Positions 23,325 to 53,886 are shown, numbered from the stretch's first letter. The stretch is 64,000 bases of DNA from Tubulanus polymorphus (GCF_964204645.1 NC_134030.1:22032210-22096209), one strand, 5' to 3'. A program made the numbers and translations. Notes: generated from the letters alone by a model not told the origin.

Positions 23325-23505
23325 ATTTATTTCTTTTCTATCAACTGCAGCCGGAGTAGAATCGACCCCGGGTCGGATGAGGTTGACCCTTGGTCATGTC
23401 CAATCTTACCAATAGCTTCCCGTTAACCCAAACTCTAGCCGAATAGGACGCGAACCTAAAATCTTCGGTGTGCCAGCCGGGCACGCTAACCACTAGGCCA
23501 TAGAC
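23325..23505 (-). mobile_element. tRNA-derived SINE
   Basis: Minus strand: A box TGGCCTAGTGG, B box GGTTCGCGTCC, non-tRNA body and A-rich tail. Confidence 0.6.
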
Positions 23506-27900: not shown

Positions 27901-28364
27901 AGGTACTCGACGTCTATGACGAGTTGTATGATGACATAGATTCTGTTACTGTAACTGACAAACTGCACACCAGCGATCAGAAAGTTACTACAGATCCGTA
28001 CGTGAATATCGAGACCGGGAACGGCAAAGACACAGCTCCGTACATGGATATGGCAGCCGCGAAGGGTAAAGACACAGCTTCATATATAGATATGGAAGCC
28101 GGGAAGGGCAAAGACACAACTCCTTATATGGATATGGGACCCGGGATAGAAGAGGATACGTACAGGAGTACGGAAACCGGGAAGGACAAACACACAACTC
28201 CTTACACGAATACCGGAGCCGAGAAGCGCAAAGATAGACATAGTTACGTGAATACCGAAGCCGGAAAGGCGCGCCATTTGAAGAAAGATACTGATGAACC
28301 CGTGAAAGATGATGTTGAACTTTATTCTTACGCTACTGTTCAATATACTCGCAATAGGCGTTAG
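24934..28364 (+). CDS. R-Tyr copy 1: single-Ig-domain type I membrane receptor with a tyrosine-repeat cytoplasmic tail
   Basis: Exons: 24934-25033 (signal peptide MMNTRLFVIIYIVLLKLG), 25509-25829 (Ig-like, YIC...W...FRC), 26552-26591 and 27162-27204 (stalk, less certain), 27495-27604 (TM IIYIACGVIGFLLVIVIIVVIVVC), 27854-28364 (RRRR + tail with 12 Tyr). Phases join in frame. Likely 5' UTR exon donor near 24222. Confidence 0.8.
25509..25829 (+). CDS. Ig-like domain exon of R-Tyr copy 1
   Basis: 321-nt phase-1 exon (tttcag / gtaagt) with two Cys, a Trp and the FKADFKLHNGTTFRC motif; matches ORF 25508..25837. Confidence 0.8.
26840..27116. mobile_element. Tandem pair of about 140-bp palindromic MITEs (single copy at 52494-52636; fragments near 36840, 38870, 61950)
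   Basis: TIR GGGCCCAGTTGCACAGTC / GACTGTGCAACCGGCCCC. Confidence 0.7.
27854..28364 (+). CDS. Terminal exon of R-Tyr copy 1: Tyr-motif repeat cytoplasmic tail
   Basis: Acceptor tttcag; ORF 27864..28364; 42-bp/14-aa repeats such as PYMDMAAAKGKDTA. Confidence 0.8.
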
Positions 28365-30091
28365 AGGGCGCCATTGAGCAAACGACTACTGATTATACAT
28401 ATGCAAAACATAAGGCTAGAAACAATTGATTATTTTTCATAATCTGCTGAGCTCAAAAGTTGAATCAGCTGCATGCATACATTATTTCTTTCTAAAAATA
28501 ACAGACCCGACAGTTTTAGTAATGAACTGACTACATATCTTATTCTAGTTCACAAAAATGTTCGGGTCGACTAGGAGAAACAATTAGGTATGATTCACTA
28601 GCCTAAGTTTTAAGTTTTTGATATACACGGCATTTGTAGATTAGACTAAGAAACATCAATTCACTTCAACAATCATTCAAATTCCACTTTTAGCAAAATC
28701 CACATGGAGAATGCTTCAGTTTACAGGGCAGTATATATTTTATGATATTCAGCTACCAATGGCCTATAGTTCGTAGACTCTTATGAGGAGTTTTAAGTGC
28801 CAAATTGACTTGTCAATCATCTTCAGGGGCGGATCCAAGTAAGGCCGAAGCCTCCCCTTATCTCTTTTGCCAAGAAAATATTTTCACAACATGGATAAGG
28901 AATGTAACAAATATAGTAGAAAGTCTTTGTCATTCATTTTGTACTTGATTTACTCTAGATGCCCCCAGAAAATGATCCAATCCTGATTCCCCTAAAAAGA
29001 TATATAAAATATGGTATAAAATCCGTCAGTCTTATTCTTTTCTTGATGATTTCTTTTCTTTTTTCCTCTTTTACTACTTCGGTCAAACAAGATACATTAC
29101 ACGATGGTAAAAGCTTTCCTAAAATAGATGTGTTTTAAGATTTCATTCAGAAGTATCGACGGATGAGGATTCCGGAATACTGGACGGTCAAACATTCCAC
29201 ATTGTTGGGACAGTGAACTTCAAAGCTCTATTGCCAAATGACCTTCTTGGAGACAGGTTTGACTAGAGGTGTTATCATTTATATCGACTCATATTCTATT
29301 CATCCATTATTAGATCAAGCACATTCTAATGATCTTAACATTTTATCAATATGTTCATTTCAGTTACTTTCACTTTGTCTCACTTTAAACCCATGTTTTA
29401 GTCTCTGGTTTGCAATTACACATTTTTTCATTTAATCAGACGGTTCACAGATCATTTCGTGCCTCGATATTTACCAACCAATCACTTCGTGCCTCGATAT
29501 TTACCAACCAATGATATGTAGATGAACCGACCGATGTGTTTTACCAGGTGTTATCATTTATATTGACTCATATTCTATTCATGCACAGCGTTTATCGTTG
29601 ACTCAATACATTTTCATAGTTCTATTATTCACCCTCTAAGGATTATATTTTAGTGGATACTTCCATTTTTCCACATATTTTCTTCGGGCTGATAGAACAT
29701 CTTATGTGAAGTTAACAATTGATCGATCAGATTTTTTGACTTTTTAAATGCATCAGAATCGAGGATTAGTTGCTTTGTTTATGGATATTTAGAGTAGTTT
29801 CACTTTGTTTTTATTTCATTAAGGTAAAAATCATTTCCTCCTCTTTTCACATCTGGGTTTCGTTTCATGAAAAGTTTTAAGCTTTAGACAGTTAAATATG
29901 AATTGTTGTCCTCATTACAAACTTGAAGTAACCAATCATAGCAGCTGAACTTGAGAGATTCAAGTTATTTTTACTCTGTTTTGTAATATTGGACCCTGAG
30001 CGAGACTCCTGGTTTTGATGTACACATGTCTTGTATGCAGTGACTATCCATCACTTGGACGTTACCAAAAATACAAATGAAATTGAAATGC

Positions 30092-30276
30092 TGGTCGAAT
30101 TTATACTAGGAATAGTTCGTTAACTCATTCGTCGCCTAGGAATCGAATTGACGTTTCGTCTTCGTAGTTCTCAACTTCCGCGACGATTCTAAAATGAGAA
30201 CTACTAAACCGAAACGTAATTTCGATTCCTAGGTAGTTAAAGAAATACGATCTTATTCCTAGAATTAATTCGGCCA
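30092..30276. mobile_element. Palindromic MITE-like element (paralog at 55628-55812)
   Basis: TGGTCGAATTTATACTAGGAATA ... TATTCCTAGAATTAATTCGGCCA; whole-length imperfect hairpin. Confidence 0.6.
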
Positions 30277-31488
30277 TCATATCGCAAACCCCCAATCAGT
30301 CGCTTGCCGGCTCTGCCAAGACTGAAGATCCTTTCAGAATCGAATCAATTATACCAAGATAAGATATTTATTTCACTCCAACCATAAGAATGGTACATGG
30401 AGGCAAGATTGAATACAAAATATGAAATATAAAAATTTACAAAACATAAACAGAATTTTATACATATATACTTTCAGACGAAGCAAATGGGAAAATAATT
30501 CTATAACAAAGTTAAGATCCAATTTTTCAGTAAAACAATTTACAGACAAAGCAAGTACAGAGATTGAATTATATACAGCAAAATATACCACACGTATATA
30601 CATATACACAATTTACTGGAGGGATTTTTATAAACTTAAACCTAACTCGATAAATTGAGCTATTTGTGGGTTAGGATTCGTTAATATTTCAGAGTTTCTG
30701 GACATACTTAAATGGATGGAATTATCACGCATATCATATAACATTAATGAAATGCAGGTCATCTCCTCTCTGACTACGTTACAGGCGGGGCACAGTCTTT
30801 CACTTCTGTATGAGCGTTCGATCGATTATCTACCGGTAACAAATAGGAACCAATTCTGAATTCGAATGAGCTATAACGCGCAAGACGATACTTTCAAATT
30901 TTCAGATATTTTCTTGAACATGTGAATTTAAAAATCGATCATGTATAAGTTTGTTAGACTTTTAAGTGCATATCAGAATGGGTTCACTTAGAATGGTTTA
31001 GTTTGATAGAATAGTTTTACTTTTCTGATAAACCGTTTTTTTTTTCATTAAGGAAAAACTCACTTTTTCCTAGACTCACTACACACCAGAGTTTGGTTTA
31101 CTCCAGACGGTTATATTTGAAATCCATTATGAGTTTGAATTACTGTCCTCATTAAAAACTTAAGTCCTCACCTCATCAAGTTTTCTTCACTTTTTTGTGA
31201 ATCGGACCCTGACCTACTAGTCTCCTAGACTTGATGTATATCTGTCTGCGGTAAAACATTGAACACTTTTAATTTTTGAACACCATTAATTTCCTATTCT
31301 TTTTGCATACCGGTAGAGATATTTACATCTTAACAATTGAACACCTCGTCTATAGAATTTCATAAAAATGCTTGTCGACAAGAGGTTCCCTGTGGAAGAG
31401 CGTTGTTGTAAGATGTGTTTAACTGTTTTCTGTATGTGACGATGATCTGAGGTTTGTGTCTTTATATCCAGGTAATGAATGAATCAAG

Positions 31489-34400
31489 ATGAGGAATCTA
31501 TGGAGGAATCCGCAGAAGTGTTTAGTGATCTACGTGATTATACTGTTGAATCTCATGGCGTACAACAACAGCCCACAAGCGTTTAGAGTCAAGAGAAATA
31601 CCGGTAAGACAACGTGAAAGAACATATCATAGAGTATATATGGAAAATGTATTACATAAGATAAAACTTATCACCAGACTTTGGAAACTTGTATTTGAAA
31701 TATCTGGGACAAAATGATAGTAGCTGAATAGTCCACTTGAACTGATACATTTACCTCGAATGAAAACCCACAATCTCTCAAGTGTTTTATATTTTACCTT
31801 AAACATTTTAACTATTCAATAATTGTATTTTATCTTCTAAAACTCCATCTGCACTTGATTCTTATACCCGGGTTATGCGTCTCCACTACGCTCGCAACAC
31901 GATGCTGAGTTTTCCGCAAAACCTGGGTTGTAGAAACCGTAGTTGAAAAAGAAGGGTCCACTCCTTATTTAACCACGTTCGCGTAAAACTTTTAGAATTT
32001 TTACTAGAAGTGTAGAAAGTAAACCCGCGCAACGATTGAACTTAAAATTGAACTACAGATTGGTAGAAATCCCACAATAAAATCAGCGAAAGAAATTGAA
32101 ATCAGAATTCAGAATTCATTGTAAACGAGAATATATTTCGAGCAACGTTTCGGCTAAACACAACTATGAGCCAATCATCAGGCGTACCGATACACGAGAT
32201 ATATTTAACAAGATATTTATACAGAAAATGAACTGAAGAATGAGTGATCGAAGTTAAATACAGAGTTACTGTAAAGTTATTCAAAACATAGACAAGGAAA
32301 CAATAGTAGAAAGAGTTAAGCAACAGCAAACAGCAAACTAGGAGTAAAACGAGGAGGTAAATAAAACACAAAACCCGAAACTAAAACGAGGAGGTAAACC
32401 TGAGGGTAATCAAACAATGGCAAAAACATAACAAGGTTAATCAGAGAGTGATTGACTGAGAGAGTGAGGGGAAACAAAGAGGGCAGGCTAGAAGGGAAAA
32501 TTAATATAATGCGGAGACAGGTGAAGCGAGAAATTTTGAGATCAATAAGTTGTGGGGGAAAATCGATATTCGAATTGTGGCAATTTTCCAGATGTTCAAT
32601 TATCAGAGCTGATTTCTTAACGTGTCGTTTGGTTTGATTGGGACAGGGACACCGCACGAATACGTTTGTTCAGTGACTCATGGCATATAATGTATATTTG
32701 ATATTTCAGCACCTGATGGAGTTGTACTGGACAGTGTGAATGTATTACCGGGTACAAGAATATTACGTATATTGTGTATTTGATATTTCAGCACCTGATG
32801 GAGTTGTACTGGACAGTGTGAATGTATTACCGGGTACACCTATGTTACTGTCGCAGGAAGGTAAAACTGTTAGTATTACCTGTAAACAGAGCAGCTCTGC
32901 AGCGACTGGTGTAGCATTCCAGCTACAAGTGAATAATGGACCAGAAGGGATCTGGATTGCATTACCTTCAGAATCAGCACCAGTTTGGGTTTTTCAGCCC
33001 GATGCTCGTAAAATGTATAAATGTGTGGCCATTAATTCAGCCGGAATTAAAGAAAGTCAAATCTACCAATCAGATGTAATCAGTGAGTATGCATCACTTA
33101 TCAAATAATGCTGGGAAAATAGAAAAAAAGTTTCCTGTGCACATGTTATATTTTTTCGTGCATATAACTTTTATTTCAGGTATAAAGATAAATGAAAACC
33201 CGTGTAAACTGCATGAATTCCAACCATCACTAACTTGTACTTGTAAAGCCACTAGTAAGATTGGTAATCCAATCATCAAAGTAAAATGGTATGCTGATGG
33301 ATTTACTGAAGGTTCAACGGATATTGATCAGATTCCCGATCAAGGCGTAAATACTCCGGTGAAAGATGGAGTTATCAACAAGAATCAGATGCGGTTTAAT
33401 TTAATGCTGTACGCAATATTGATTCAATGTCGGTTATGGAAGTATAATGGGATCGAGTTACCGAAAGTAACACTTCAAGAACAAATACTACATCAAACTC
33501 CAATGAACGTTACGTGTAAGTTGGAGAATATTTTCATAAGAGAATTTTCATACGATATCAGAGTGACAATAATGCATGTTACATCATTTATTCTATTGGT
33601 AACTGCCCATAGTTTGAGATTTAAGAGTTACTATTTCATAACGACTGGTGATCATGCCGATGAAATTCTTTCGTTTTAATATTTGGTTCCAAGAAGGTAT
33701 TACGAGTACCGAAGCGAATTGTTAATAATAACATTAAAAGGACTAGAATATGATTGTGCATGAATTTGCTTTTGAAATCGAACCTACTAGAAAACGATTT
33801 CACCTTCTATGATTAGGGCCTAGGCTTAAGATTTTGAGCCCACATGGAAAAATTGCAGCGAAATTGGTAAAAATGTTGACATAAAAAGTTCGTTTCTGTA
33901 ACAATTGTCGTCTTCGGGTATTCTCGTGGCTATATCAGGGATTTTTAATTTGTAATATGGGACAAAGCTTCTTGGACCGGGACAATAGGATCACGCACAA
34001 CTCACCCGAACAAAGGATTCTTTTCATGAGTGCGATAGATACGCCACCTATCGTTGATATGTATTGTTGCAAAAACAAATAAACTATATTACAATATAAT
34101 TATGTCGGGAGTTACACCGTTACATTTCCGTCGATTCAAATTTCGACGCCCTTGATAAACACACATTCCTCGGAGCGCAAGTAATATTTTACCATGTTTT
34201 ATGGACGGACGTTTTCTCGATTTTGCACCGATCAGTGAAATTGAAGTGGATAAACTTGATATCATCCAAAGTATATTTGCATCTTTATCTTTCAGATTTT
34301 CCCGATGAAATTGAAACACCAGATACTTTCACCGGAGAACCTGACATTAGAACTGAAGGAGAAGTTGTAGAATATACTTGTAGAACAGTGATAGGAAGAC

Positions 34401-37400
34401 CCGATCCTACAGTGATATACCAACAGAAGAGAAGAGGTTCTGAACGATGGCAGCCGATTCCTGATCCACAACCTCGTAAAGTACCTCTCAAAATGGGTTT
34501 AAAAGGTTTTGACACGACGTACAAGTTCAAAGCTGATTTCAAACTGCACAATGGAACGTCATTTCGATGTGCTGTAAAGGAGAACCTTACGTTTCCAGAA
34601 CCTCAGCAATTTAATCAAATCATTGTTCATTGTAAGTAACAGTTTCTTTTTCGAATTCGAGAAATAAATAATTTTCCCTGCAACAATACAGACCCCAGTG
34701 GTAGTGCAGACCTATCCACACATATAGCATGTCACAATGTAACCATGCTAAGCAGGAACATGACAGAGTCTCGCGATGTCATCAGGTTCGAATCCCTGCC
34801 GAGGGAGGAACGTGGAAGAGTCTCACAATGTCATCAGGTTCGAATCCCTGCCGAGGGAGGAACATGGCAGAGTCTCACGATGTCATCAGGTTCGAATCCC
34901 TGCCGAGGGAGGAACGTGGCAGAGTCTCACAATGTCATCAGGTTCGAATCCCTGCCGAGGGAGGAACATGGCAGAGTCTCACGATGTCATCAGGTTCGAA
35001 TCCCTGCCGAGGGAGGAACGTGGCAGAGTCTCACGACGTCATCAGGTTCAAATCCCTGCGAGGGAGGAACGTGGCCGAGTCTCACGATGTCATCAGGTTC
35101 AAATCCCTGCGAGGGAGGAACGTGGCAGAGTCTCACGATGTCATCAGGTTCGAATCCCTGCGAGGGAGGAACGTGGCAGAGTCTCACGATGTCATCAGGT
35201 TCGAATCCCTGCGAGGGAGGAACGTGGCAGAGTCTCACGATGTCATCAGGTTCAAATCCCTGCGAGGGAGGAACGTGGCAGAGTCTCACGACGTCATCAG
35301 GTTCAAATCCCTGCGAGGGAGGGACGTGGCAGAGTCTCACGACGTCATCAGGTTCAAATCCCTGCGAGGGAGGAACGTGGCAGAGTCTCACGATGTCATC
35401 AGGTTCAAATCCCTACTGAGAGAAGATGGGTCTACTATGACAGGGCTTAAGAACTGTGCTAGGTCAGATATAACTTTTACTAATGTTTTGTTTGTTTTTC
35501 AATCAGATTTTGCTGCACCAGTTTGCAAGAAATCCAGTAAAAATAAAACAAATGCAGCGTATATTGTAACAGTTAATAGTTACCCATTGACTCAACAAGT
35601 TACATGTGACCCTCCAGCTGTCGTTCAAAAACTATCAAACTATCAGTGGAATATAACGATACCTATCGTAAATAGTACCACAACTGACTATAGAGGGCAG
35701 TGTTTGGCTGACGGTATTAATGAAAGGGTCATTAATGTCACTGGTTATCATCACGCCGGTCCAACTGATGAACCAGGTAAGATTCCGGGTCACAACTTTG
35801 TAAAATGATTTAATTCCATGACATTATAAAACTCGAGGCCATCATCTCTTAACTCGAAATCATTTCTACACAATCAAAAAATTTACTTACGAAAGTCGTT
35901 ATTTTGATAAATTGTCACAAAATAACCTATTAATATATTTCATAGTCTCAATTTACTAAGTCGTATGTCGTCACATTACTGGAGTTGTCTCTATCATTGG
36001 GTCTCATTTTACTAGGTGTAAGTCGTCATTCATTTGAGTCGTCACAATTCGTATTCGAATCAGCCACCAGTATTTTACCTAACCTGTAACTCAATTAGAT
36101 TAGTCAGTACAGCGGATGAGTCTTATGGGAAATCCGTGCGCGATGACGTAATTCTCTGTGTCGTCCGAACTGAATGTATTTTTTGTGAATATATCACATT
36201 CAAATATTTCGTAATGATTTAGCATCTTTAACTTTCTATCTTGAGGCTGCTTGACCCAATCAAGGAACAATTAATTTTCTCCCATTTCAAAAACAACTTA
36301 TATACTTCATTTAGAGAAAATTTGAGCTTTGAAAGTTAAGAAGCAGTTACTTTTTGCTTGACCTATTTAATTATTCAATTCAATTGCTGTTGTTTTTATC
36401 AATAGTTACAATGGAACTATTTCTAGCTTTATATAATTCTATTCAATCGCATCACCGATTTGTTTAAATTTCAGTTCCAGAAGAAGGGACTGGGGGAATA
36501 GTGTTTGCTGTAATCAGTATACTGATATTACTGATTCTGATAATACTGTTTATACTGTGTCTTTGTGGTTGCTGTAAGTTTTACATAAAACCATCATTTA
36601 ATCTGAAAAACTATGATAAACAAACTGCAGAATCAGAATACTGTGTTATTTCTCATTGACAGTGCGGTGCAGAAAACCTGATGATGAACTGTGTAGATGT
36701 GGAAATTGTAAGTTATGTAATAATTCAAATAAAGAATGCTAGAAATTGAAAATAGTGCATAAGGCCGAATGTATTCTAGAGCCCTAAGATAACCAGATAC
36801 AGTTGATCCTCAATTATCTGTCCACATTTTTAATCTCGGGACCCTAGTTGCGCAGTATCATTCAAAAAGTGTTCGTAAACTATTAATCTGGTCTTAAGTT
36901 GTTAGTTCGGCTACAAAACTAAAACTGTCTTAAACTGGCCTTGAATGTTAGCCATCACTGTGCACATTACAAAACATTTAGTTGAAACACACAATAAAAT
37001 GATGTTATCTGCAATCGTAGATTTTCCCCTGACAAAACCGGTCTCGATAACTGAGAGTTCATGAGGTCTGAAATCAGTCACACTTCTAGATTATGCTTAA
37101 AATTGCATACATGGGCTTAAAGAAACAACACAATTTTGTGTGCTTGCGTTTGACAAAAGATGACGATTCAAAAAATGATTGTATTGTTTTTTTTTGTTTT
37201 CAGCACTGAATTTCAATAGTATAAGCCGTGAACTAATGATTTGTAATTGTCGCACCGAGGACTCGTCGGACGATAAACTATGTGTATGTTGTTGCTGTAA
37301 GTGTCATAGAAAAATACCATCGTAGAATCGTAGAAAGGATTATCGCAAATTAGAATAATTTGTTTGTTTGTTTTTAGTGACTTGCAAATTACCTGCTGCC

Positions 37401-40400
37401 GATGAACCTGATAATAAGGATGACTCCTCAGATGAACTGTGTCATTGTTGTTGCTGTGAGTTCTATATATAAACTGATAAAGATTAATAGTCAGTAACTG
37501 TAGAATAAACTGTTGTATTATTTTCTATTTGCAGTGCTGTTGAGAAGTGAGCCGTCTAGATGTAATTACTGAAAGTTTTATTAACATTGAAAACATTGAT
37601 GATTAATCCTGCAAAATTAACTGTTATTGTCATTGGATATTCACGAATTCAAGAATGTTTGGAACTTAGAAGAACAGAATGTTATCATTTCTGGGATTCA
37701 GCACGGGTTGGGTCGTAGTTTCAGATGGCTGCAAACGTGAAATGTGCTACGACCAAACATTCACCGGTTCATTAAAAATCATTTTGATATAAACCGCCGC
37801 CTCGTACCCATAGGAATTAACGCGGAGAAGCTACTATGTAACATCGTTCTCTTCACAAATAACGGTGTTTGAAAAAGTAACCATTTTACAATGTTTAGCA
37901 TCATTCAACTTTCAATCAATTTTCTAGACACAATACGCGCATTATTCAGACCAGAATTTAGGTGCACGAGACGCATTAAAAATCTAAAGCCAGAATATGC
38001 GTAATGTTTATTTATTTTCGTCTGACATCGATCACTTTCAGATCTGAATCAGTGCGGCCTAAATAAACCGTCGTTTTTATATCTATTACGCAGGCAGCAT
38101 TAATTAGATTATCTAATGGCTAATCAGTAGCGAATGAATTACTCGTAGATGCAGTGTCTTGGGTACAGGCTCGATACAAGTCACTGCGGGGTCACAAATC
38201 AACGTTGATAGGTTAAGATTACTTGCCTACGTAGGTTCTGCATTTTTCTCGTTGGGAAGTATCGTTACGTTGTTGGGTGACGATAGTAATAAATTATCAC
38301 ATATGCCTACCGGGTATCGGTAATGAAAACTTGCGTCCGGTGCCTTGTCCCAGTTACCATTTATTGCGAACTAGAAGAAATTCCGTAAATCCGTGATTCC
38401 GATATAGTACCGGTTTAAACTCGAGAAAGTTACGCAGTATCATTGGTTCAATTATCTCATAGCATTAGTATCCATGACTATCTTTAGTGGCTCCAACAAT
38501 ATCCAAATCACACTGTTTATTTATTGGGTTGATTTGTCAGGTGAATGTGCATCATGTAGACGAACAGTATTTCTGTTCTCTAATTTACAGTCACGTGTTT
38601 GGTTCCGAAATCTAAAGATGCGATTGAATTGTTGCGTTGGACAAGTGAAACCTGGTATGAAAAAGGTAAGATTCTCTCACATGATTTACTGCGCATATTC
38701 TCAGATATCGGTTTGATAATTTTAGGTGTTGTTTTCTCTTTGTAGATCATGAGAATTGGGTGAAAACACGTGACCAACTGCAGCCGGGTATTTATAGAAT
38801 TATTAACCCTTTATTTCTATACTTTCTATATTCTTGCATGAATACAGTACCTGATGCCCTAATGTAAGTTGTCGTAAACTATTCTACTGGTCTTAAGTTG
38901 TTAGATTTGCTATTGGACCAAAATGAGCTTAGACTGGTTTAAGCTCAACTAGACATATTGGCCACAGAACTAAAACTGTCTTAAACTGGTCTTGAATGTA
39001 AGCCATCATGGTGCACATTAGCCCTATTACAAAATATTTAGTTCATTGTCAATCAAAATGTTGCGATCGTAGATTATCATAATATACAGAATGCTAGAAA
39101 TCTAAAAATAGTGTACACAGCTGGAGGGATCCGAGCCAGATACAGTTCTTGATTACTTGCCTACGTAGGTTCTGCATTTTCTCGTTGGGAAGTATCGTTA
39201 CGTTGTTCGGTGACGATAGTGATAAATTATCACATATGCCTACCAGTTATCGGTAATGAAAACTTGCGTCCGGTTCCTTGTCCCAGTTACCATTTATTGC
39301 GAACTAGAAGAAATTCTGTAAATCCGTGATTCCGAAATAGTACCGGTTTAAACTCAAGAAAGTTACGCAGTATCATTGGTTCAATTATCTCATAGCATTA
39401 GTATCCATTAGCATTAGCATTAGTATGACTGTCTTTAGTGGGTGGCTCCAACAATATCCAAATCACATTGTTTCTTTATTGGGTTGATTTGTCAGGTGAA
39501 CGTGCATCATGTAGGACAAACAGTATTTCTGTTTTCTAATTTACAGTACCGCGTTTGGTTCCGAAATCTAAAGATGTGATTGAATTGTTGCGTTGGACAA
39601 GTGAAACCTGGTATGAAAAAGGTAAGATTCTCTCACATGATTTACTGCGCATATTCTCAGATATCGGTTTGATAATGTTTAGGTGTTGTTTTCTCTTTGT
39701 AGATCATGAGAATTGGGTGAAAACACGTGACCAACTGCAGCCGGGTATTTATAGAATTATTAACCCTTTATTTCTATAACATGTAGAATATCTTGCATGA
39801 ATACAGTTCATAGTTTCAGAAATCATCCACTAATCATCTGAAAGATATACAACTGATTTTGCTTCATTATCAAATCTGTAATTATCAATTTAAGTTTATG
39901 GTTAACAACGTAATTTCTTGAAGATTTCTTGAGAATTGTTTGATCAATTATGTTGATATTTCGTTTATATCTGTATTAACCCTAGACACGCATCTGCAGT
40001 CTTACTGGTGCATGCCTAGCGACCATTGTTCTTAAAAGAAATCAGCACCTCATGCACATTTTCGAAGTCTATGGGAAATTTCAAAGACATTTGGCTCATT
40101 TGTCTCGAGGTCTGAAGTGGACAAAACAACATGCTCCGTAAAAAGACATTGGCTTGATCGAAATCAAGATGACTAATTTTCGATTTTCGTTTTCAAAAAT
40201 CAGTACTATTTGTACATTTTGGAGGTTTTTCTAGAGACATTTTAATAGATGCTTTAATCTATTTTTCTTGATGTTTGGTTTATACATGTATCTACCCTAG
40301 ATGTATCAACAGTTCTGAAAATGAATAGTTGGAATCAAGACTGGCGGCTATTGTTACTTGGCAGGGCGGTTAAAACGACCCTCTCCTTTTTTACCAAGTG

Positions 40401-43400
40401 CCCAAAATATAGGCTTGTCATTCCCTGTACTGATCATGATCTGATAATATGTTTCAAAGTTTCAAAAAGTGTAGCTAAATCATTTAACTGTGAATGACTA
40501 TGTAACAATTATTTTTTCACTTCGTGAATGCGGCGCAAGCGGGCCACCAAACGCAAATAAGAAGGGACCTTCCCATGTGAGGTGAAACCCTCTTTTCCTT
40601 TCTGGCAGCTAGGGATCCACCCCTGTTTGAAAAAAATCAGCACTTTTTGCACAATTTACCGACTCATATGTGGAACAAACCAGCATGTTATGTTTTATTG
40701 TTTGTTTTGGTTAGGTGTTTAATGCAATTAACTCACAATTATTTCTATCTGTGAAGCACATTTGTAATAATGGATTACCATTGACAATAAACTATACGCG
40801 AGAAACATTTTTAGATGTCGTCTTTTTTTTCATGTAGCTAATATCTGTGTTGTTTTTTTAACAGTTAAAACTGGAGACTTTGAGGTCATTGAAAGGTCAT
40901 TTAATCCAGGTATGTTAGATATTTATTCTAATTTCAATAAAACAATATAAACTCAGATGATTCATCGATGAATCAACTACTTGTTTGTTAACGTCGATGA
41001 ATTCATTTAAAAAATTGATTTATCGTCAATTTTTCTTTCTAGAAATTGATAGAATAATTGTCGATGTTTACGGAACTGAGAATGATTGGATGATAACGAG
41101 AGATAAGGATAAACAAGGTAAGAGGAGTGATGACTCAGTTGCCAGGGTAAGTGTCAAACCGGCTGAATGGTTTGTTGCAACCCGGGGCCGGGTTTATAGA
41201 CTGGTATTAACTTTAAACCCGGGGTTAGTTTAATTAATTTTCAATTAAGTTAGCCCCCGGGTTAAAGATAATACCAGTCTATAAAACCGGGTCCTGCATA
41301 CAATACTGTACCGGAATATAACACTTCCCCGGGCCTCCTATCTTCACCCAACAGTAATTCAACCTGTTTGATGCACAATTTTTTTGATTATTGAAAAAAA
41401 TGCTTTTTATATTTCATTTCAGCAATAGCTATCAGAGAATTCCTGTTTGGACAGTTATCACATGATGAAAGTAAGTAATCGTTTACCTATAGTTAAAGTG
41501 TTAGTTAGTTATGTACATGCACATGGGTGTTATGTGAACATGCACATGTGAGTTCAGTTGACATGCACGTGTGAGTTATATTTACATGCACATGTGAGTT
41601 CAGTTGACATGCACGTGTGAGTTATATTTACATGTTCATGTTATTATTACGTATACATATGAGTAATACATGCATGTACATGTGAACATGTGCATGTGAG
41701 TTTACCTGCGATGTGTTTTAAGTTTAAGTAGAGTTTGGTCAGTTTTCATACATTTCCAGGTTTGTTAGATTTGGTGAATGAAATTCTAAGTAAGTACAAA
41801 ATCTCGGTATTGTATCAACTCTCTTCAACTCTAACCATCAGAAGTGTTTGTTATTGTTTATTGACAGGAAAATACGCGAGAATAAACGATTTAAAAACAA
41901 AACTATCAAATGAGATCGGTAAGATTTGATTGAATACAGTTATTGATGTAATGAGTTTATTGATTATTATTCTACTGTCAACTCATTTTGTAAATGTATT
42001 ACAGATACATTACTGAACAAGAAGAGGTCAATAGATGGCGCTGATTACAATAGAGATGAAGGTACATGATTATTTACTGTTCAAATGAAATATTCAGCTT
42101 TGCAGATAGAAATGTGACGAATTCTATTCAAGATGGCCGCTTGGTAGCGTTTTGGCAAAAATCTATAAACCTGATACAAGCGACCAGTTTAGAATTTGTA
42201 ATAATTCACTGTGTTATTTCGTGAAATGGAAAGTTAATCTAATGCCATTTTTGCCTAAATTCGTACCAATTTTGCCAAATTGGATGCATCAAAATTTGAG
42301 ATGGAAATTTCATCTTGAATATATTAGACTATAGCATCAGAATTATTCAAGTTACAACAAAATAATCAAATTCACATTTGTTATTTAAGAAATAAGATGT
42401 GATACAAACTATGGGTAATGATACAGCATGAGTGTTGAACCAATTTCAAATCTAATTCTTTGTTTCAGATGAAGTTCATGTAAGTTTTATGACGCAATCT
42501 AATGAAGAGAAAAGACCCCTGACAAACAAAGAGAAACAGTTCATCAGAGATGGTCAGTAAAACTATGAATTCGATCAGAGTTAAATTTTCACATGTAGTT
42601 GACGACACTGAGTTACCAGAGAGTCTCGTAAAGTGTTTACAGGACTTACTGGCGAAAATTGCTAACTTTTTGAAAAAAGGACTTCCGAATTTGTCAAGTT
42701 TTATTTAGATACCTATTAGTAATGATTAGTCTTGTAGTGACCAGGGTTCAGTGATTCACTGTGTCGCTAATGTTTAGGATTTATCTGTATTTATCGATTT
42801 GCAAAATGAAGCGAGCGACAAAAGAGCAACTGCTCTGTGTGAATCACATTCAGCTTTTACCGGAAGCTCAAACCATTGATGATATTGTAGTTTTTTTTTG
42901 TAAGATTCAAATCCCCAGTAAACGGTTGTAATGAATTTCTATATTTTCAGTTGCTTCAGCAGTTGAATCTATTGTTGATTTGTTTGCTAAAATGTCCGGT
43001 AGGTTCCATAAATCATTTCAGTAAAAATACTGTGGAGTTTGTTGTGGAATCATTGAATAATTGATTGTGTTTATTTTTACTGTAGATGCTGAATTATGTG
43101 AACGAGGAATATTCAACATAAAACGTAGGTTTTAATATATATATATATATGTATTTATTGCCAAAGTTATAAACTTTTATGACAAAAATCGATATACAAG
43201 CATAAATGGCGGGAAACAATATAACATAGAACAAACATTGATACATGTATGTGGATTACATAATAAGTTAAGGTTGCCTGAGTATATAAACTTTCTTAAG
43301 GAATTTCGAAAGGTTTGAAAAATCATTGTTATTACGCATTAGAATAGAAAATTAATGCATAACAGATTATTATTTAGCCTAAAATTGTCCCTTGCACGTG

Positions 43401-46400
43401 CCGGTCACGGAGTATACGGTGTTTTATAGATGATCTAGAGTTTACCATGAATTGTTGTGTCCAGATATACGACAAACCACAGTCATCTAAAATCTTCTAA
43501 ATAAATAATAGCCAGAGACTCTTAGCAATAATCTTTAAAATACAAATTCAAAATATTTTGTAGAGAATTGAACTAGGTTAAGTTTGTTCACACGAAATCG
43601 TTTTAACTCAAAAATTAATCAGAATTCTAGGCTTCACAATGTAGGAAAAATTCCAGGGGAATTAAGGTAAAATAGTTAATATAAGTGCAAGCTTGGGGTA
43701 ATATACAACATTAAATCAGCCACGTTTTAAGAAATTTAAAGAAATGGAAACTTAGGGCTACTAAAATACAACCAAATACAACCAAAACCAAAAGTGGCAT
43801 TTTTACCGGTGGCATTTTTTCCTATGTTGCAAAAGTTTCAAAAGTTTCTAAATGTGTCTAAATTCGGAATGGTTTCGCGAAGTTCAGTAAGAAGGGTACA
43901 ATCAAAGAGAAAATGTAATTCATCCCCAAAAACATTGCAAATTGGGCACATTCTTTCATTTCTAGGTAGATGGAGATTAGGTAAATTGTCCCCTGAAAAA
44001 TATGTTCCATTTGTAATTTCTAACTCACATACATTTCGGAATTTGCCTCATTCTAGTTTTACTTCGCACAAAAACTTATATTTTCGTTTTATCGACATTT
44101 ACAGTGAGGTCATTAACGGCACAGTATTCAAATGAAGCCTTTAAAGTTTAACTGGAGTGATCTCTCATCCTCCGTGGATAACCGTGTTATCCGCATATAA
44201 TGAATAATTGAGTAAAGCATCAATACCCTGATCACACCCCGAGTTCAGATTTGCTATAAACGATAAAGTTTGGTTGCCACGGTCATTAAAAAAGTCCTCA
44301 ATATCATTCAAAAACTAAAGAGAAGGAATATGCGACAGGTTTTCTTGTCCTTCTGTCTTGTCCTTCAGCCCAGTACAGCCCCCTGGTGACAATATGAGAT
44401 GTAACCTTTCTGCTATTTGTATTGTAGAAGAGATTGTTGATGAGATAAAATGCGAATATTTTCAAACTCCCGAATTTAGAAGTAAGTTTCCAATAAAATC
44501 AGAACCTGTTTTAACAACCAGAACTCAAATATTAATATATGTATGTATTGTATTATTATTTATAGGATCAGTTGAGACTGCAGTGAATGAAGCTATCGAG
44601 AATTCAAGTAATCAAATATTCTTCAAAAGTTCGAATTCTGTGATTGAATTGAGTTCAGTTTGGCTGAAGGTGCTTTTTTAAATGTATATACTTATATTTT
44701 ACAGAAAAATCACAACACGGCAAAAAACCATGCTATGAATATGCAGGTTTGTAAAATTCTAATTTCTGTAAATGAATTTGACCTGATGTGGTTGCTACCC
44801 TGGACCGAATTTCATAGATTAGGGGGCAAAATATTCCCCTGGACCCAGTTTTATAGACTGGTATTATCTTTAACCCGGGAGATAACTTAATTGAAAATGA
44901 ATCAAGTTAGCCCCCGGGTTAAAGATAATACCAGTCTATAAAACCGACTCCTTGGCCTTGGAAACTTTTTGAAAATTGTCAGTATTTAACAAGTTTCTCA
45001 ATGTTGCTATGGTGGTTGTCACCATTGTTGAGGATTTTCCCCACGAGGATCATTCATCTATTACGTATGCAAAAAATTCAGAAAAATCCTCGAGTAAGCT
45101 GATAATAGTTAGATCGAGTCTATTATGTAGAAAAAGAGTGGATGAAAATGTAGTCACGTGATAAAATTCATCCGGAGAAGAATTGAATTTTAAAAATCAT
45201 TAAGGTGCGTACAATACGCATTACTATTTACCCTCCCCCTTTTGTACACAAAAGTATGCAATTTAATAAGACCCCCTTTGTACAATTTGATTTTTGAGTT
45301 TAACCCCCTCCCTACCCAAAATGCGTACCTAATAATTGGGTGACCCCTTAAAAGGTAACTTTGAACCCGCCCTATAAATGAAACTAGGCCCATGATGATG
45401 ACCACAAAGAGGAGATAATTTTCAGTTGCTTTCCCTTCAGAATTTTATTCTATTATTTCAGTGCAGTGGATAGCTGATAAAATGAAAGGTAAATTGACTG
45501 ATAATAAATACTCAATTTCGTGATGAATTTGTGTTGATGTTTACAAAAATAATTCTAATTTCAGGTTTCACGGTTAAACCATCTGAAACTTATGGTATGT
45601 AATATTGTTATATACAGTTGATTATAACGGTCGCTGCCATCGTTTTTGTCACTGTCACTGTTCACTTAACACGAACATTTATCAGAGAACAAATTTGTAA
45701 AATCAAACTCAAATTCAATGAAAATACCATTTATAAATCGCCAAAATTCATTATGATGTCATATTTTTCATTGGTCCCAAAAGTGGCTTAAAGGACTTTG
45801 ACTATATTCATACATGTATCTTGTGTGGGTGCCTCATCAGTCAGTCAAGTGGGAGGGAAGTTGAGTAACAATTCACTAAAAATCATGACGTTTTTTTCAG
45901 AGCGTAATGAATTTGCTAAACGTGCACGAGCAGCAGGTAATGCATAAATTATGTGTGCTGAAATTGATGTATTGATTTTGATAATGTTTTATGATGTTAT
46001 ACGTAATTTGATTTCTGTTTCAGTATTAAAAAAGTCAAAGAAAGTTTATTTTTGAGATACGTGATAATGTTTTATGATGTTATACGTAATTTAATTTGTT
46101 TCAGTTAAGAGGAAATCAAGAGAGTTGATGGATGAGATACGTGATATAACGGATAAAGGTAATCAATATTGACTTCTATAAACATCTCACTGACTCAATA
46201 ATTCTATATTCATGAATTCATGTTTCCACATTAGTAATGTAACATGTCTGGTTCCTACGGAAGAGCGGCCACATGAAAATCTTTTTTAAAAGTCTTCTTC
46301 GGCAATGTTTCTTTCTTGATAATCACCTTCATCAACCAATCACCATTAAAATGTTCTGACGTCACTGTAGTGTATGATGTAATCTGCTTAATTTCCAACT

Positions 46401-47939
46401 GGAAAAGGAATCAACACCCATGAAATATTCGGGTTTATTGAATTCATGTAATTGTGATAACAATTCTGATGTGAGTTTGATCTGATGTTACATGTGAATG
46501 ATATTGCTGTTTATAGTTTGGATGCATCAGTTTTTCAAGAATATTTCATTTCATTTTTCAGGCGAATTAAAAAAGCTCGGTTTCCTGGTAGATGAGTCGA
46601 GTAAGTAAATTATACAGTCATCACTTTCTGATTTAATAATCAAATCACAATTAAGTTTGGGATGAAATTAAGTTTCGTTTTCGTTGATGAGAAATCTGAA
46701 GTATGATTAAACCGGTTTAATCTGGATTAGCGGGACACCAGGATGAAATTCATGTAGTTTGAGAAATCCACATTTAAAATCGTATTCCATGAGATACAAG
46801 TTAATTGTTTGATAAAGATTAGTAACTGAATCAAATCTGGATTAAACTGATCTTGATTCAATAAGCTTGTTTGTATTTAATGTTCTAATCTCTACTGAAC
46901 AGTATCATCAACAATGTTTGATAATATATAATGAAATCACTCACTAAGAATAAAAAGAGTGCGAAATGTTTCCTTATAAAGTTTCCTAGATAATATTCGT
47001 TCAACATTTAAACAATATCATAATAGTCATCTCCAGGGTTACTGAGTGTTACAACAACAATTATTAGGTATTATTTATACAGCCCAGAACAAATGAACTA
47101 ATTAAGTGTTAAGATGTGACACAAACTATTTGTGTTTCATAAAATGCGTTACCTCTGTAAAATCAACTTATCATGGCTTCATCGTCATATGAATTGAAAT
47201 CTAATTACGGTGATAATATTCATCAGTGTTTGTTAAAAATAAGAAGTAATCGGGTCACCTATAAATGAACGCTTCAGCGCACACGAGTGCATTTTCTAAC
47301 CGACAACTCCATATCGGTAAACAGGTACAATGATCAAAAACCGAAATCTGGATTAAACTGATCTCTTTCCCGCATGGCATTGATCGATCTACCGATCTAT
47401 GATTTCGGTAGATCATTAAACGTCAGTTCATTCCTTTGTCGGAGATCTCATAAATATGTATGTGGTGTAAGAAACACTTTGGACTTAATAGAACACCCAG
47501 AAAAAATCAAAGCTAATTCTAACTGAATCAGGGGTGGAAATAGTTGAGGTATTATCAACCATTGTCACTGTTAACAGTAAAGCCGTAATTAGTTGAATTG
47601 TCAAGAGGTTGTGCATTTTATGAAACACACTGTAGCGGGTTATATATAGTTGTATAAAAACAGTTACAAGCTGAACACATCTAAAACAGAGTAAACTCTA
47701 GGGGCCACTGATAAACTATTGTGAATATAAGTTAAAGTTGACGGGTATCTACATTTAGGGAGTGTGCAGTTGTATTTGGTGTTTGGTTTATATTGTACAT
47801 ATATCTATTTATAGAAGCTCCTAGTCAGAGTAAAGAAACTGCTGCTAGTGATGGTCAAAGTGCTGCTGTTGATAGTCACACAAGTGATACCGTATCGAGT
47901 GGTGATCGTGAGTGGGTTCATATCGGTACACGAGTCTAG
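31489..47939 (+). CDS. R-long copy 2 (complete model, about 32 exons, about 940 aa): signal peptide, 4 Ig-like domains, TM, Cys-rich region, micro-exon tail ending GTRV*
   Basis: Exons: 31489-31603 (SP, RVKR), 32792-33082, 33180-33515, 34296-34631, 35507-35776 (Ig-like D1-D4), 36475-36573 (TM), 36663-36707, 37204-37296, 37378-37455, 37535-37546, 38591-38665, 38746-38787, 39547-39621, 39703-39744, 40865-40909, 41043-41117, 41423-41470, 41760-41789, 41868-41918, 42005-42061, 42469-42552, 42951-42998, 43086-43124, 44428-44481, 44566-44607, 44705-44746, 45462-45488, 45565-45594, 45901-45936, 46105-46158, 46562-46600, 47815-47939. All introns are phase 1. The ectodomain-TM part is well supported; its join to the micro-exon tail is inferred (an alternative stop is TGA 37570-37572). 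Confidence 0.7.
32100..32660 (-). mobile_element. Degenerate Penelope-like retroelement fragment (GIY-YIG C-terminus plus a hammerhead-like terminal motif)
   Basis: Minus-strand KKSALIIEHLENCH resembles the SAxxEH...H motif of PLE endonucleases; CTGATGA...CCGAAACGTTG lies downstream at about 32140-32185; absent from the copy-3 intron. Confidence 0.5.
32710..32833 (+). repeat. 82-bp repeat spanning the intron/exon boundary of Ig D1 (2 acceptors)
   Basis: Acceptors at 32709/32710 and 32791/32792. Confidence 0.85.
32792..33082 (+). CDS. R-long copy 2, Ig-like domain 1 exon
   Basis: VSITC...W...D.RKMYKCVAINSAG, an I-set-like D-x-x-x-Y-x-C-x-A-x-N-x-x-G signature; 291 nt, phase 1. Confidence 0.8.
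33180..33515 (+). CDS. R-long copy 2, Ig-like domain 2 exon
   Basis: LTCTC...VKWY...IQCRL; 336 nt, phase 1, donor gtaagt. Confidence 0.7.
34296..34631 (+). CDS. R-long copy 2, Ig-like domain 3 exon (paralogous to the R-Tyr Ig domain)
   Basis: EYTCRTVIGRPDP...W...FKADFKLHNGTSFRC; 336 nt, phase 1. Confidence 0.8.
34752..35415 (+). repeat. 51/52-bp intronic minisatellite, 13 units, containing tRNA A/B-box-like motifs (2 units at about 60410-60510)
   Basis: Unit GAGGGAGGAACGTGGCAGAGTCTCACGATGTCATCAGGTTCGAATCCCTGC(C). Confidence 0.9.
35507..35776 (+). CDS. R-long copy 2, membrane-proximal Ig-like/beta-sandwich domain 4 exon
   Basis: YIVTVNSYP...WNITI...DYRGQC; 270 nt, phase 1; 3' end of ORF 34729..35808. 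Confidence 0.7.
36475..36573 (+). CDS. R-long copy 2, transmembrane exon
   Basis: GIVFAVISILILLILIILFILCLCGC; tttcag / gtaagt. Confidence 0.8.
38217..39810 (+). repeat. Local duplication of a two-exon block (about 38217-38850 and 39151-39810)
   Basis: Two copies of the ...LLRWTSETWYEK and DHENWVKTRDQLQP exons; only one copy in R-long #3. Confidence 0.85.
43135..43780 (-). mobile_element. Degenerate non-LTR (LINE) ORF2 3' fragment with a (TA)n end
   Basis: Minus-strand KILDDCGLSYIWTQQ...IKHRILRD resembles C-terminal ORF2 motifs of CR1-group LINEs; lies at the breakpoint of the exon-block loss. Confidence 0.5.
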
Positions 47940-48984
47940 TACCTAGCCGTCGTTCCCCATAAGGGTTGATTTGACACTAAAATCAGTTGTTGCATTGCAA
48001 GAAACAGGAGTTAACCTTTAATGAACAGTTTATCATCAAACGTTGTAGGGAACCCGTAACAACGACTGGTATTCAGACTACTACACAGGATTATAACCGC
48101 CAGTCTCTAGTGGTGGCAGGGTCTGGGTGGAACTGGGTGTAACTCACAACTGTGGAACTGTGTTTTGTATCACGCTATTATTAAGATGTTTGTTAATCTC
48201 TTTTTGGGCTCGAATCATTGAGATTTTATACGAAAAGAAAAAGAAAAAGATATGAACACAGTTTCTAATAAAATCATTGAAATCTTTATCTTTGTTATTT
48301 GGTTGTATGTAATTTCTGCGCTATTTAATTACTGTAGATCATTGATTAATTATTGTTGAAACAATTAATTGTAATTACATTAGTTAATCATAAAAAATAT
48401 GTTCTGCTTTTACTAAAATACAGTGTAACTGAAGTAGATGAAATACAGTGTAACTGATCTATAGTGTAGCTGAAATACAGTGTAACTGAATGAATGTAGT
48501 ATTTTATTGTACCGTAGTTGTAACTTAATCCAGCAAAAATAAATTGTAAACGAAATTGCTTTTTGCTAAATCATCAGCGGTTGTTCTTGGGGAATATTAG
48601 GCCTACATTGTAGTCCAACTTACGCTGTATAACTGTATTATGATACAATGTAACTGGTTTACTGTTTTACATAAAATATTATGTTTTAAGTTAAAAACTG
48701 TAAAATGCATCACTGTTTGATTTGATAAGTTACTGATTCCATAAATTACTGCATTACTGATCGATTTCATTGATCATTGGAAAACTGTGATAAGTTTTAT
48801 TTCATTTAATTGAAAAAAATTTTGTAAAAACGTGACATTTTATGAAACCATTGATGCGGTTTATAAGATCAGCTACACGCGGACTCCTGGTAAAACTTCG
48901 TGCTGTATTTTTGCTAGAAATTGCTAACGATGTAACGTGCTAATTTCATTCGCTTAAATAAAAGAATTTATCTTTATAAATAAA

Positions 48985-49166
48985 TTCATTTATTTCTTTT
49001 CTATAAACTGCAGCCGGAGTAGATCCGACCCCGGGTCGGGTGAAGTTGACTCTTGGTCATCTCCAGTCTTACCAATAGCTTCCCGTTAACCCCAACTCTA
49101 GCCGAATAGGACTCGAACCTAAAATCTTCAGCGTGCCAGCCGAGCACGCTAACCACTAGACCATAC
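48985..49166 (-). mobile_element. tRNA-derived SINE (paralog of 23325-23505)
   Basis: A box TGGTCTAGTGG, B box GGTTCGAGTCC. Confidence 0.6.
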
Positions 49167-50543
49167 ACCAGTAGTTTGTAAGTGCGTGTCTGGTCAGGTG
49201 TGGTGAACATTTATCTGTGGTGACTATCAGTCGGGTGTGTGGCGACTGGTGACCATTCAGGTGCGGTGACTGTCGAGTCAGATGTGGAGACACTATTCAC
49301 TAACAGTACCCGCTCTATCATTCGGCGTCACAGTTACAGCAGTTTCAATGCAATTGTCAGGAAGTCGTTTTGTCCTGCAGCTCCTAAAAGTTCCTCTTTT
49401 TCCGTAGATGAAGTAGTCAAAATTACACCTTGTATCCATCTCTGACACTTCTGCCTTCCCGACATCGTGAATGTATTTTACAATCTCTCGTAAATTATCT
49501 TTTATATCTTTTATTGTATTTCACTAAGATTTTCTAATTGATATCTAAAAGTTTGATAATTTTTGATTTTTCAGTTTCTAAAAATGTATACCTTATTTTG
49601 AGTGGAATGGATTGATTTTAGTAGAGACCCGCAGTTTATGGAGCGTAGATGGATTATAAAAGTAATAGTTCATTGACTCCAATAGGTGTAAAATGCGATA
49701 CATTGTTAAACCATTCTTGTCGTACGTGGCGTTGACCTCTTTTACCCGACTGGTATTTCTTCACACCTAAAGGTGCTCGCACATGTCACCCGTTATATCA
49801 AACGAGCACCGATACCTCTTGTGAAAAAATCATGAAATTCAACGAAAAGCTTAAGATGTAACTGATTAAAGGTGAGTTTGTTGACGTATTTAACTCCACT
49901 CCAGTCGGATCTGTTCAACTCGGAGATAACCGTTCAACTCAGAGATAACCGTTCAACTCGGAGATAACCGATCAACTCGGAGATATCCGTTCAACTCAGA
50001 GATAACCGATCAACTCGGAGGTAAGCGATCAAGTCGGAGATAACCGCAACTCGGATGTTGAAATATGTTTTTACGGCAGTATTTAAGAAATACATATCAT
50101 CCAACTCGGATATCCCTCATCAAGTCGGACACTTTTTTTTGCGGTTCCAAAAGATCCGACTTGAGCGGAGTCTACTGTATTCAAGAATAAGAGTCAAACT
50201 TATACAGGCCTATATGCCACAATTTCATCTTTCATTTTCTGACCTAAATTCTAAAATTCTAGTGAAACTTTCGACGATTTTAAAACATTTTCAAGCGGTG
50301 AAAACTCTATATCTTGTACAAAAGAAAATTAGAAAGCTGGACTTTGGACCCCGGGGCTGATATGAAGGTCATACAATTATTGAAGGACGACCAGTGATTT
50401 TAACACCTTTCGCTTCCTGCTCAACGCTCGAATATATTGAATGTATCACCGGCGCTGATCATCAAAATCTTATCTTTAACTTCCTCAATTATCAGACCAA
50501 GTGGAACTCGATTATTTTCCTTTATTCTGTACTCTGTATCACA

Positions 50544-53500: not shown

Positions 53501-53886
53501 AGAAAGTTACTACAGATCCGTACGTGAATATCGAGACCGGCTACGACAAAGACACAGCTCCGTACATGGATATGGCAGCCGCGAAGGGTAAAGACACAGC
53601 TTCATATATAGATATGGAAGCCGGGAAGGGCAAAGACACAACTCCTTATATGGATATGGGACCCGGGATAGAAGAGGATACGTACAGGAGTACGGAAACC
53701 GGGAAGGACAAACACACAACTCCTTACACGAATACCGGAGCCGAGAAGGACAAAGATAGACATAGTTACGTGAATACCGAAGCCGGAAAGGCGCGCCATT
53801 TGAAGAAAGATACTGATGAACCCGTGAAAGATGATGTTGAACTTTATTCTTACGCTACTGTTCAATATACTCGCAATAGGCGTTAG
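50544..53886 (+). CDS. R-Tyr copy 2: single-Ig receptor with a tyrosine-repeat tail
   Basis: Exons 50544-50643, 51168-51488, 52209-52248, 52684-52726, 53018-53127, 53376-53886; near-identical paralog of copy 1 (4 aa differences in the Ig exon, one extra Tyr in the tail). Confidence 0.8.

Follow-up and report, generated by a model that had tools for sequence, protein, structure and literature searches.

The products of schistosome micro-exon genes (MEGs) are small, secreted and encoded almost entirely by micro-exons, and in the PEVK region of titin, as in other same-phase exon arrays, many short exons of one phase make the length of a protein region tunable by exon number. In a different setting, the Ig-NACHT 'NLRC4' of a sea cucumber is a receptor that joins immunoglobulin (Ig) domains to a NACHT domain (PMC8699970). 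Here we describe a locus of the ribbon worm Tubulanus polymorphus, on a stretch of 64,000 nucleotides (nt) of chromosome piece C6 (G000:C6:22032210-22096209, called the window below, to which all coordinates refer), in which Ig and transmembrane (TM) exons are followed by a long array of micro-exons. The unit under study, copy 2, covers positions 31489-47939 on the + strand. The original prediction, made from the DNA sequence alone, had proposed that its micro-exon array encodes the cytoplasmic tail of a four-Ig transmembrane receptor. We find that the array is, with near certainty, ancestrally part of the Ig-TM gene, and we hold it probable that copy 2 is still a single gene. The gene models are already in RefSeq as 'uncharacterized protein', we found no paper on the family, and it is known so far solely from T. 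polymorphus.

Architecture of the receptor and its tail

Exon borders were rederived from the sequence and then matched to RefSeq proteins by mapping these back on the window. When 1.84 billion representatives were searched with the exon of the third Ig-like domain (Ig3), the matches included RefSeq proteins of 1144-2186 amino acids (aa) that carry this domain at residues ~248-359, and a follow-up search listed 16 family proteins, mapping back of which gave three exact correspondences on the window. In what follows, P0050 is XP_074653697 (LOC141907852), P0053 is XP_074652569 (LOC141906965), P0059 is the product of LOC141907029 and P0039 is the product of the neighbouring copy 3 (XP_074653743, LOC141907883, 1750 aa). 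The exons of the original prediction exist, all bordered by AG/GT and open in phase 1, and the RefSeq proteins map on them exactly; its borders agree with RefSeq nearly base for base, several of the rederived ones differing by 1-3 nt.

At least 13 RefSeq paralogue models, of 1038-1750 aa, run from the signal peptide to a C-terminal T-x-V in one protein, with Ig1-4, the TM segment, then Cys-rich exons or a direct join, and then micro-exons in the same order E1, E2, E3, E4; copy 2 is represented by two RefSeq genes. Nine tandem units show a 1:1 order of one Ig set and, after it, one tail-ending exon. In copy 3, the TM exon (~61598-61696) is joined directly to the first micro-exon, E1', at 62636, and XP_074653743 has exactly the junction that had been predicted. 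Copy 2 shows the same layout, in which phase-1 micro-exons of the E1/E2 type come after Ig1-4 and TM on the same strand, and the whole series forms one phase-1 frame, as had been proposed. The reading of the array as a cytoplasmic tail thus holds for the family and for copy 3, where RefSeq proteins and the 1:1 genomic order both bear it out. For copy 2 it holds in part, since the receptor model includes the first four micro-exons while RefSeq makes a separate gene of the rest. Compared with the query P0003, family RefSeq proteins show 72-78% identity over 43-100% of the query's length, the lower coverages being those of the NACHT-bearing sisters described below.

The receptor part of copy 2 comprises the following exons (a slash within a motif marks a splice border):

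31489-31603, + strand: exon 1, start codon and signal peptide; ends in phase 1; P0050 residues 1-38 map at 100%
32792-33082, + strand: Ig-like domain 1; phase 1-1; P0050 residues 40-135, exact; Pfam Ig_2 at E=0.045; AlphaFold2 (AF2) predicted local distance difference test (pLDDT) 74-88
33180-33515, + strand: Ig-like domain 2; phase 1-1; P0050 residues 137-247, exact; all-beta, low-confidence model; no Pfam match
34296-34631, + strand: Ig-like domain 3; phase 1-1; P0050 residues 249-359, exact; Pfam C2-set_2 at E=0.024; pLDDT 70-88
35507-35776, + strand: Ig-like domain 4; phase 1-1; P0050 residues 361-449, exact; low-confidence beta strands
36475-36573, + strand: TM exon, ending in the Cys cluster CLCGC; P0050 residues 451-482, exact; sole hydrophobic 19-mer window
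36663-36707, + strand: Cys-rich juxtamembrane exon A (LRCRKPDD...); in P0050
37204-37296, + strand: Cys-rich exon B; in P0050, P0040, P0041 and P0059
37378-37455, + strand: Cys-rich exon C; P0050 residues 530-554, exact
37535-37561, + strand: bridge exon D in its RefSeq form, 27 nt, donor GAT/GTAATT; P0050 reads LLLRSEPSR, F at the junction, then TCLVPK

The hydrophobic N-terminus is encoded in exon 1, and the four Ig exons measure 270-336 nt each, that of Ig3 having 24 genome copies at ≥71% identity. P0050 contains a single window with a Kyte-Doolittle value above 2.3 (residue 453), and the distal tail protein none. Ig hits in Pfam are sub-threshold throughout, with single Ig exons as with whole proteins. 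The AF2 model of the ectodomain, computed with the family alignment as input, is all-beta, domains 1 and 3 being confident and domains 2 and 4 of low pLDDT, and Foldseek aligned the whole model with the ectodomains of KIT, MDGA1, DSCAM, SYG-2 and LILRB/PirB (probability 1.00, E ~1e-10, ~440 columns). Four consecutive Ig-like domains are a reasonable reading of this model at the fold level, domains 2 and 4 being less certain. With an N-terminal signal peptide, a single TM segment and an Ig-fold ectodomain, copy 2 has the features of a type I membrane receptor of the Ig superfamily. Its Cys-rich juxtamembrane segment would likely be palmitoylated. Exon A is a cassette in a paralogue, one isoform of which lacks it (P0003 versus P0036), and its acceptor is removed in copy 3 by a small deletion; copy 3 also lacks 36913-38866 of copy 2.

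Tandem repeats occur within this part of the gene. The Ig3-Ig4 intron contains, at 34743-35426, ~13 tandem copies of a 52-bp unit with a tRNA-like GGTTCGAATCC motif, and RefSeq isoform X2 of a paralogue (P0049) starts its coding sequence (CDS) within the equivalent repeat. At 32686-32838 and 57776-58163, an 82-bp tandem duplication comprises the Ig1 acceptor and the first ~42 nt of the exon, copy 2 having 2 units and copy 3 having 4-5. All of them read AG...G/GTACAA and are phase-compatible, the implied intron being merely ~40 nt.

Downstream of the bridge exon, the micro-exon array of copy 2 contains:

38591-38665, + strand: micro-exon E1; P0050 residues 565-588, exact
38746-38787, + strand: micro-exon E2; P0050 residues 590-602, exact
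39547-39621 and 39703-39744, + strand: duplicated pair E1' and E2', within 39547-39779; P0050 residues 604-652
40080-40479, no strand assigned: high-copy repeat in the E2'-E3 intron, at the RefSeq gene break; contig word depth 1500-5500, versus ~100-300 around it
40865-40909, + strand: micro-exon E3; AG/GT borders, open phase-1 frame; in no copy-2 RefSeq CDS
41043-41117, + strand: micro-exon E4; the LOC141906965 CDS begins at its internal ATG 41090; P0053 residues 1-9 correspond to 41090-41116
41423-41470, 41760-41789, 41868-41918, 42005-42061, 42469-42552, 42951-42998, 43086-43124 and 44428-44481, + strand: first 8 of 15 further micro-exons; XP_074652569, exact
44566-44607, 44705-44746, 45462-45488, 45565-45594, 45901-45936, 46105-46158 and 46562-46600, + strand: last 7 of these 15; XP_074652569, exact
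47815-47939, + strand: last exon, disordered, Ser/Asp-rich, C-terminal T-R-V; P0053 residues 238-277, exact; pLDDT <50; stop 47937-47939

All internal micro-exons (21/21) are 27-84 nt long, multiples of 3 and in phase 1-1, with AG/GT borders and good pyrimidine tracts, and for the 15 between 41423 and 46600 the AG and GT are also kept in the copy-1 counterparts. The E1'/E2' pair is a tandem copy, at 92%, of 38217-38848. E3 is coding in paralogues (QLQP/VKTGDFE) and is a cassette in copy 3, isoform X3 of which lacks it.

The AF2 model of the distal tail (the 277-aa P0053) has a mean pLDDT of 64, with residues ~130-235 confident and helical and the last exon disordered. No Pfam family matched the tail; the tail model gave nothing at E ≤0.001 with Foldseek against the PDB, and a best Z of 6.8 in the VIA wide search, to single long helices and below the noise level for helical models. 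The ESM Atlas returned nothing by features and, by shape, TM scores of ≤0.27. As modelled, the tail is mostly helical and of no known fold. Its C-terminal T-R-V matches the class I PDZ-ligand pattern (S/T-x-hydrophobic-COOH), which agrees with the motif noted in the original prediction; eight long paralogue models end in T-[QV]-V (GTQV, DTQV, GTVV and STVV among the C-termini) and the last exon of copy 1 in TQV. Binding of a PDZ domain by this T-x-V end is a prediction from the motif.

One gene or two in copy 2

RefSeq cuts copy 2 between E2' and E4. The upstream gene, LOC141907852 (XP_074653697, 652 aa), encodes the signal peptide, Ig1-4, TM, Cys-rich exons A-C, bridge D, E1, E2, E1' and E2', all of which map exactly, and its model reads through the E2' donor CGG/GTATTT to the TAA at 39777-39779; E2 has the identical donor, which is spliced in the P0050 model. 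The downstream gene, LOC141906965, extends from the ATG at 41090 to the TRV and stop at 47939, with XP_074652569, XP_074652568 and XP_074652570 of 277, 303 and 267 aa. Isoform X3 lacks the 30-nt exon 41760-41789, and isoform X1 keeps the in-frame 78-nt intron 41790-41867. It had been claimed that the array has no convincing start of its own, and here the annotation disagrees, giving 41090-47939 as a separate gene with a Met inside an exon. The phase-1 frame upstream of this ATG is open through E4, E3, E2' and E1', which have neither Met nor stop ahead of it. An in-frame intronic ATG lies ~45-50 nt upstream of E4 and the RefSeq start does not use it.

We consider, on indirect arguments, that copy 2 is probably still one transcription unit from the signal peptide to T-R-V, and that the RefSeq split is most likely a fragmented model: the CDS of the first gene is closed by read-through into an intron, and that of the second sets out from the first Met in a frame that extends, open, further upstream. 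With no Met or stop in E1, E2, E3 or the 5' portion of E4, a 5'-incomplete transcript would be assigned exactly Met 41090. The unused intronic ATG hints that E4 is spliced to something upstream.

The junction between the receptor and the array lies at exon D. The original prediction had bridged it by a 12-nt exon (37535-37546, donor GAA/GTGAGC), for which RefSeq has the 27-nt form (37535-37561); no RefSeq model uses the shorter one, and paralogues bearing the identical GTGAGC read through it. The ancestral donor of exon D, at 37571-37572, reads GA in copy 2, and because of this GT to GA mutation a cryptic donor is needed and an in-frame TGA is created at 37570-37572, where read-through stops. 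Among 12 aligned genomic paralogues, exon D ends in ACT/GTAAGT in ten and in ACT/GAAAGT in two, copy 2 and one other (L006), which, judged from its exon-D reading, is probably LOC141907029; the P0059 product of that gene has the same short D exon, 1377 aa and a full tail. Scored by a position weight matrix that was derived from 45 locus donors (range 5.2-10.8, median 7.9), the 27-nt form of exon D reaches 5.4, the 12-nt form 4.7, and E2 and E2' (CGG/GTATTT) 5.3. Both exon D options preserve phase 1 and both are weak cryptic donors; either may be the one in use. The contigs of three sequencing runs aligned here are DNA-like, extend across introns and contain no GT..AG joints, and are therefore uninformative on splicing. 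In one of these DNA contigs (run X1), position 36913 is followed by 20 other letters and then by 38886, so that 1972 nt are skipped; it resembles the copy-3 arrangement, without Cys-rich exons B-D and the first E1/E2 pair, and would be either a paralogue, paralogues being 85-96% identical, or an allele.

The distal array was compared between copy 1 and copy 2 over 17 comparable exon pairs. Mismatches amount to 8.0% in exons and 8.7% in introns, with a synonymous divergence (dS) of 0.081, a nonsynonymous divergence (dN) of 0.103 and thus a dN/dS of ~1.27. AG and GT are kept in both copies in all pairs (17/17), so that the 68 splice nucleotides show 0 changes versus ~6 expected from the intron mismatch. 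Three sized exon-length differences, of 3, 6 and 3 nt, are in frame, the fourth gap, in the last exon, being unsized as the copy-1 alignment is incomplete there, and gaps open at 4.8/kb in exons versus 13.6/kb in introns. The distal exons of copy 2 have thus stayed spliceable and preserved their frame after the duplication, with amino acids changing freely. Such retention argues against a dead remnant; it does not separate one gene from two.

Several observations weigh against a single unit. RefSeq left E2' unjoined to E3/E4 despite evidence for three distal isoforms, and the intron where the break falls contains a high-copy repeat (40080-40479). In strength, the donors of the bridge exon and of E2' rank near the bottom for the locus, and with a dN/dS of ~1.27 the distal exons show no constraint on their amino acids. 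With several lesions, copy 2 may be decaying or splitting. The RefSeq XP models are themselves predictions.

The better of the alternatives, which we regard as possible but doubtful, is that a gene fission is in progress and that copy 2 consists of two transcription units, as in RefSeq. The first would encode a 652-aa receptor with a short tail (the Cys-rich segment and two E1/E2 modules) ending in the retained intron after E2', and the second a soluble cytosolic protein of 267-303 aa with the distal tail modules and the T-R-V end, from a promoter gained between E2' and E4, which the inserted repeat, for one, could have supplied. The two RefSeq models, the latter with its three isoforms, speak for this account, and the repeat in the intron at the break and the weak E2' donor suit it; a further tail-only RefSeq gene exists elsewhere (LOC141906989, 194 and 226 aa), as do short-tailed receptor paralogues (P0006, 534 aa; P0038, 565 aa). 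However, a read-through end upstream together with an internal-Met start downstream is typical of fragmented models, E3 would be non-coding although it is intact and in frame, the very donor sequence of E2' is spliced at E2, and neither a promoter nor a first exon was identified for the distal part.

That the receptor instead ends at the TGA 37570-37572 behind the dead exon D donor, a stop that the original prediction had considered, and that the array is a decaying remnant or an untranslated region prone to nonsense-mediated decay, is improbable: the donor mutation does create this TGA, both cryptic donors score at the low end of the locus range or under it and copy 2 has a 40-exon deletion, but RefSeq splices 37561 to 38591, LOC141907029 shares the mutation and the short exon and yet yields a 1377-aa product, the distal exons retain all splice sites and the frame since the duplication and have annotated splice isoforms, and no canonical AATAAA was seen within ~480 nt after the TGA.

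Tail evolution and the tandem cluster

The family protein is a type I membrane protein with a signal peptide, four Ig-like domains, one TM helix and a Cys-rich juxtamembrane segment, and its tail is long, mostly helical and cytoplasmic, encoded by symmetric phase 1-1 micro-exons and closed by a disordered end of the T-x-V PDZ-ligand type. Ancestrally the micro-exon array forms the tail of the Ig-TM gene, and in copy 2 it most likely does so to this day. As all exons are in phase 1-1, duplication, loss or skipping of whole exon blocks leaves the frame intact. Copy 2 is a derived, shortened member, which duplicated its first exon pair (E1/E2), lost ~720 residues' worth of exons and lost the canonical donor of exon D, so that a weak cryptic donor is needed in its place.

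Relative to P0002, copy 2 lacks residues 682-1400, and the junction lies between repeated modules, which fits unequal recombination between same-phase exon blocks. The long tails contain internal block repeats of ~250-280 residues. In P0039, residues 789-1750, encoded mostly beyond the window, consist of two to three tandem block repeats with 58-80% identity, indicating that tails grow by duplication of micro-exon blocks. Differences among the RefSeq isoforms amount to single cassette micro-exons, one retained in-frame intron and acceptor shifts of 1-2 residues, so that variety arises mostly between genes and not by splicing. The idea that splicing diversifies the tail, as a reverse of Dscam, therefore finds little support in the annotated isoforms, and tail length appears to vary mainly between the ~20 gene copies, mostly via duplication and deletion of blocks.

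The window itself shows, by self-comparison, a tandem segmental duplication of ~25.6 kb, with the following order of parts:

1 to ~22700: array 1
~23200-31800: gene X
31489-37572: Ig-TM set 2
38591-47939: array 2
~48900-57300: gene X'
57027-61696: Ig-TM set 3
62636 to the end of the window: array 3

Interval 39927-40772 of array 2 is without counterpart in copy 1. The Ig exon of gene X, the receptor Ig3 exon and the T-x-V last exon alternate regularly on C6, with the full triplet in 8 of the 10 tandem units and spacings of 7.6-9.7 kb, 13.5-31.4 kb and 3.3-4.0 kb. Gene X (24900-28364 and 50544-53883, + strand) and the receptor genes alternate 1:1, and its product is a small TM protein with a single Ig domain, akin to P0012 (374 aa). 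Its cytoplasmic tail has repeated Y-M-D-M / Y-I-D-M (YxxM) and Y-V-N / Y-M-N (YxN) motifs that resemble the SH2-docking sites of CD28/DAP10-type co-receptors. Several array introns carry a palindromic ~110-bp element resembling a miniature inverted-repeat transposable element (41184-41295, 44841-44952, 1250-1360 and 19497-19609), which matches itself in both orientations and is high-copy in DNA runs. An array 1 intron contains, at 9721-11116, a tandem array with a period of ~154 bp that is richer in G+C (45%).

Three sister genes in the same clusters, LOC141906642, LOC141906709 and LOC141906641, share the ectodomain, TM and Cys-rich exon A. Among the proteins scanned, NACHT exceeds the Pfam gathering score solely in the sisters P0004, P0051 and P0001; P0050, P0053 and P0039 have no Pfam match to this domain, and BLASTP of the copy-3 micro-exon tail against the intracellular parts of the three sisters gave no match at E up to 1. 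The NACHT-bearing sisters and the tandem, fast-evolving cluster suggest that the family could have an immune-type sensing role. We further put forward, as a speculative and rather unlikely combination, that the tail is a fast-evolving intracellular 'variable region', in which splice sites, frame and T-x-V alone are selected while helical modules are reshuffled over ~20 copies, and that copy 2 is in mid-fission, freeing LOC141906965, which could serve the related receptors as decoy or adaptor.

Comparison with known systems

The closest relatives of copy 2 are the family RefSeq models themselves (for example XP_074653743, LOC141907883, and XP_074652267, LOC141906794, each an 'uncharacterized protein'), which have the same architecture and exon order; copy 2 differs by its two RefSeq genes, ~720 fewer tail residues, the doubling of E1/E2 and the mutation in the exon D donor. 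What is new at copy 2 is the exact two-gene split in RefSeq, the duplicated E1/E2 pair, the mutated exon D donor with a cryptic-donor rescue common to two paralogues, and the conservation of frame and splice sites at a dN/dS of ~1.3. For annotation, the lesson is that an upstream read-through stop together with a downstream internal Met is a signature of fragmentation. If the split were real, copy 2 would be a clean natural example of gene fission after the loss of a splice donor.

Multi-Ig type I receptors (the KIT/CSF1R class, LILR/PirB, SYG-2, MDGA and DSCAM) have a signal peptide, a string of Ig domains and a single TM segment, as copy 2 does. However, sequence identity is merely 10-15%, the Pfam Ig matches are sub-threshold, and copy 2 is without a kinase, an immunoreceptor tyrosine-based inhibition or activation motif (ITIM/ITAM) or another known signalling domain, its tail being unmatched. 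With the Ig-plus-NACHT receptors, here the T. polymorphus sisters, copy 2 has the ectodomain, TM and first Cys-rich exon in common but not the NACHT domain. The tandem clusters beside these sisters point to a branch of innate immunity or cell recognition in invertebrates that has yet to be described.

The schistosome MEGs also have long runs of very short symmetric exons, skips and duplications that keep the frame, and fast-evolving tandem families. In copy 2, by contrast, the micro-exons lie downstream of a TM exon and after four exons of 270-336 nt, and would encode the cytoplasmic helical tail of a large Ig receptor, so that its product is not of the small secreted MEG type; there is no sequence relationship, and the annotated isoform variety is small here. 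Nor does the RefSeq annotation show splicing diversity of the Dscam type: it contains no mutually exclusive exon arrays, although a deeper repertoire may exist at the RNA level. Titin varies mainly by splicing within one gene, whereas the T. polymorphus family does so mainly between its ~20 gene copies. Finally, the diversity of animal receptors is usually extracellular, whereas this family varies an intracellular tail of ~300-1300 residues, using same-phase micro-exons as interchangeable modules.

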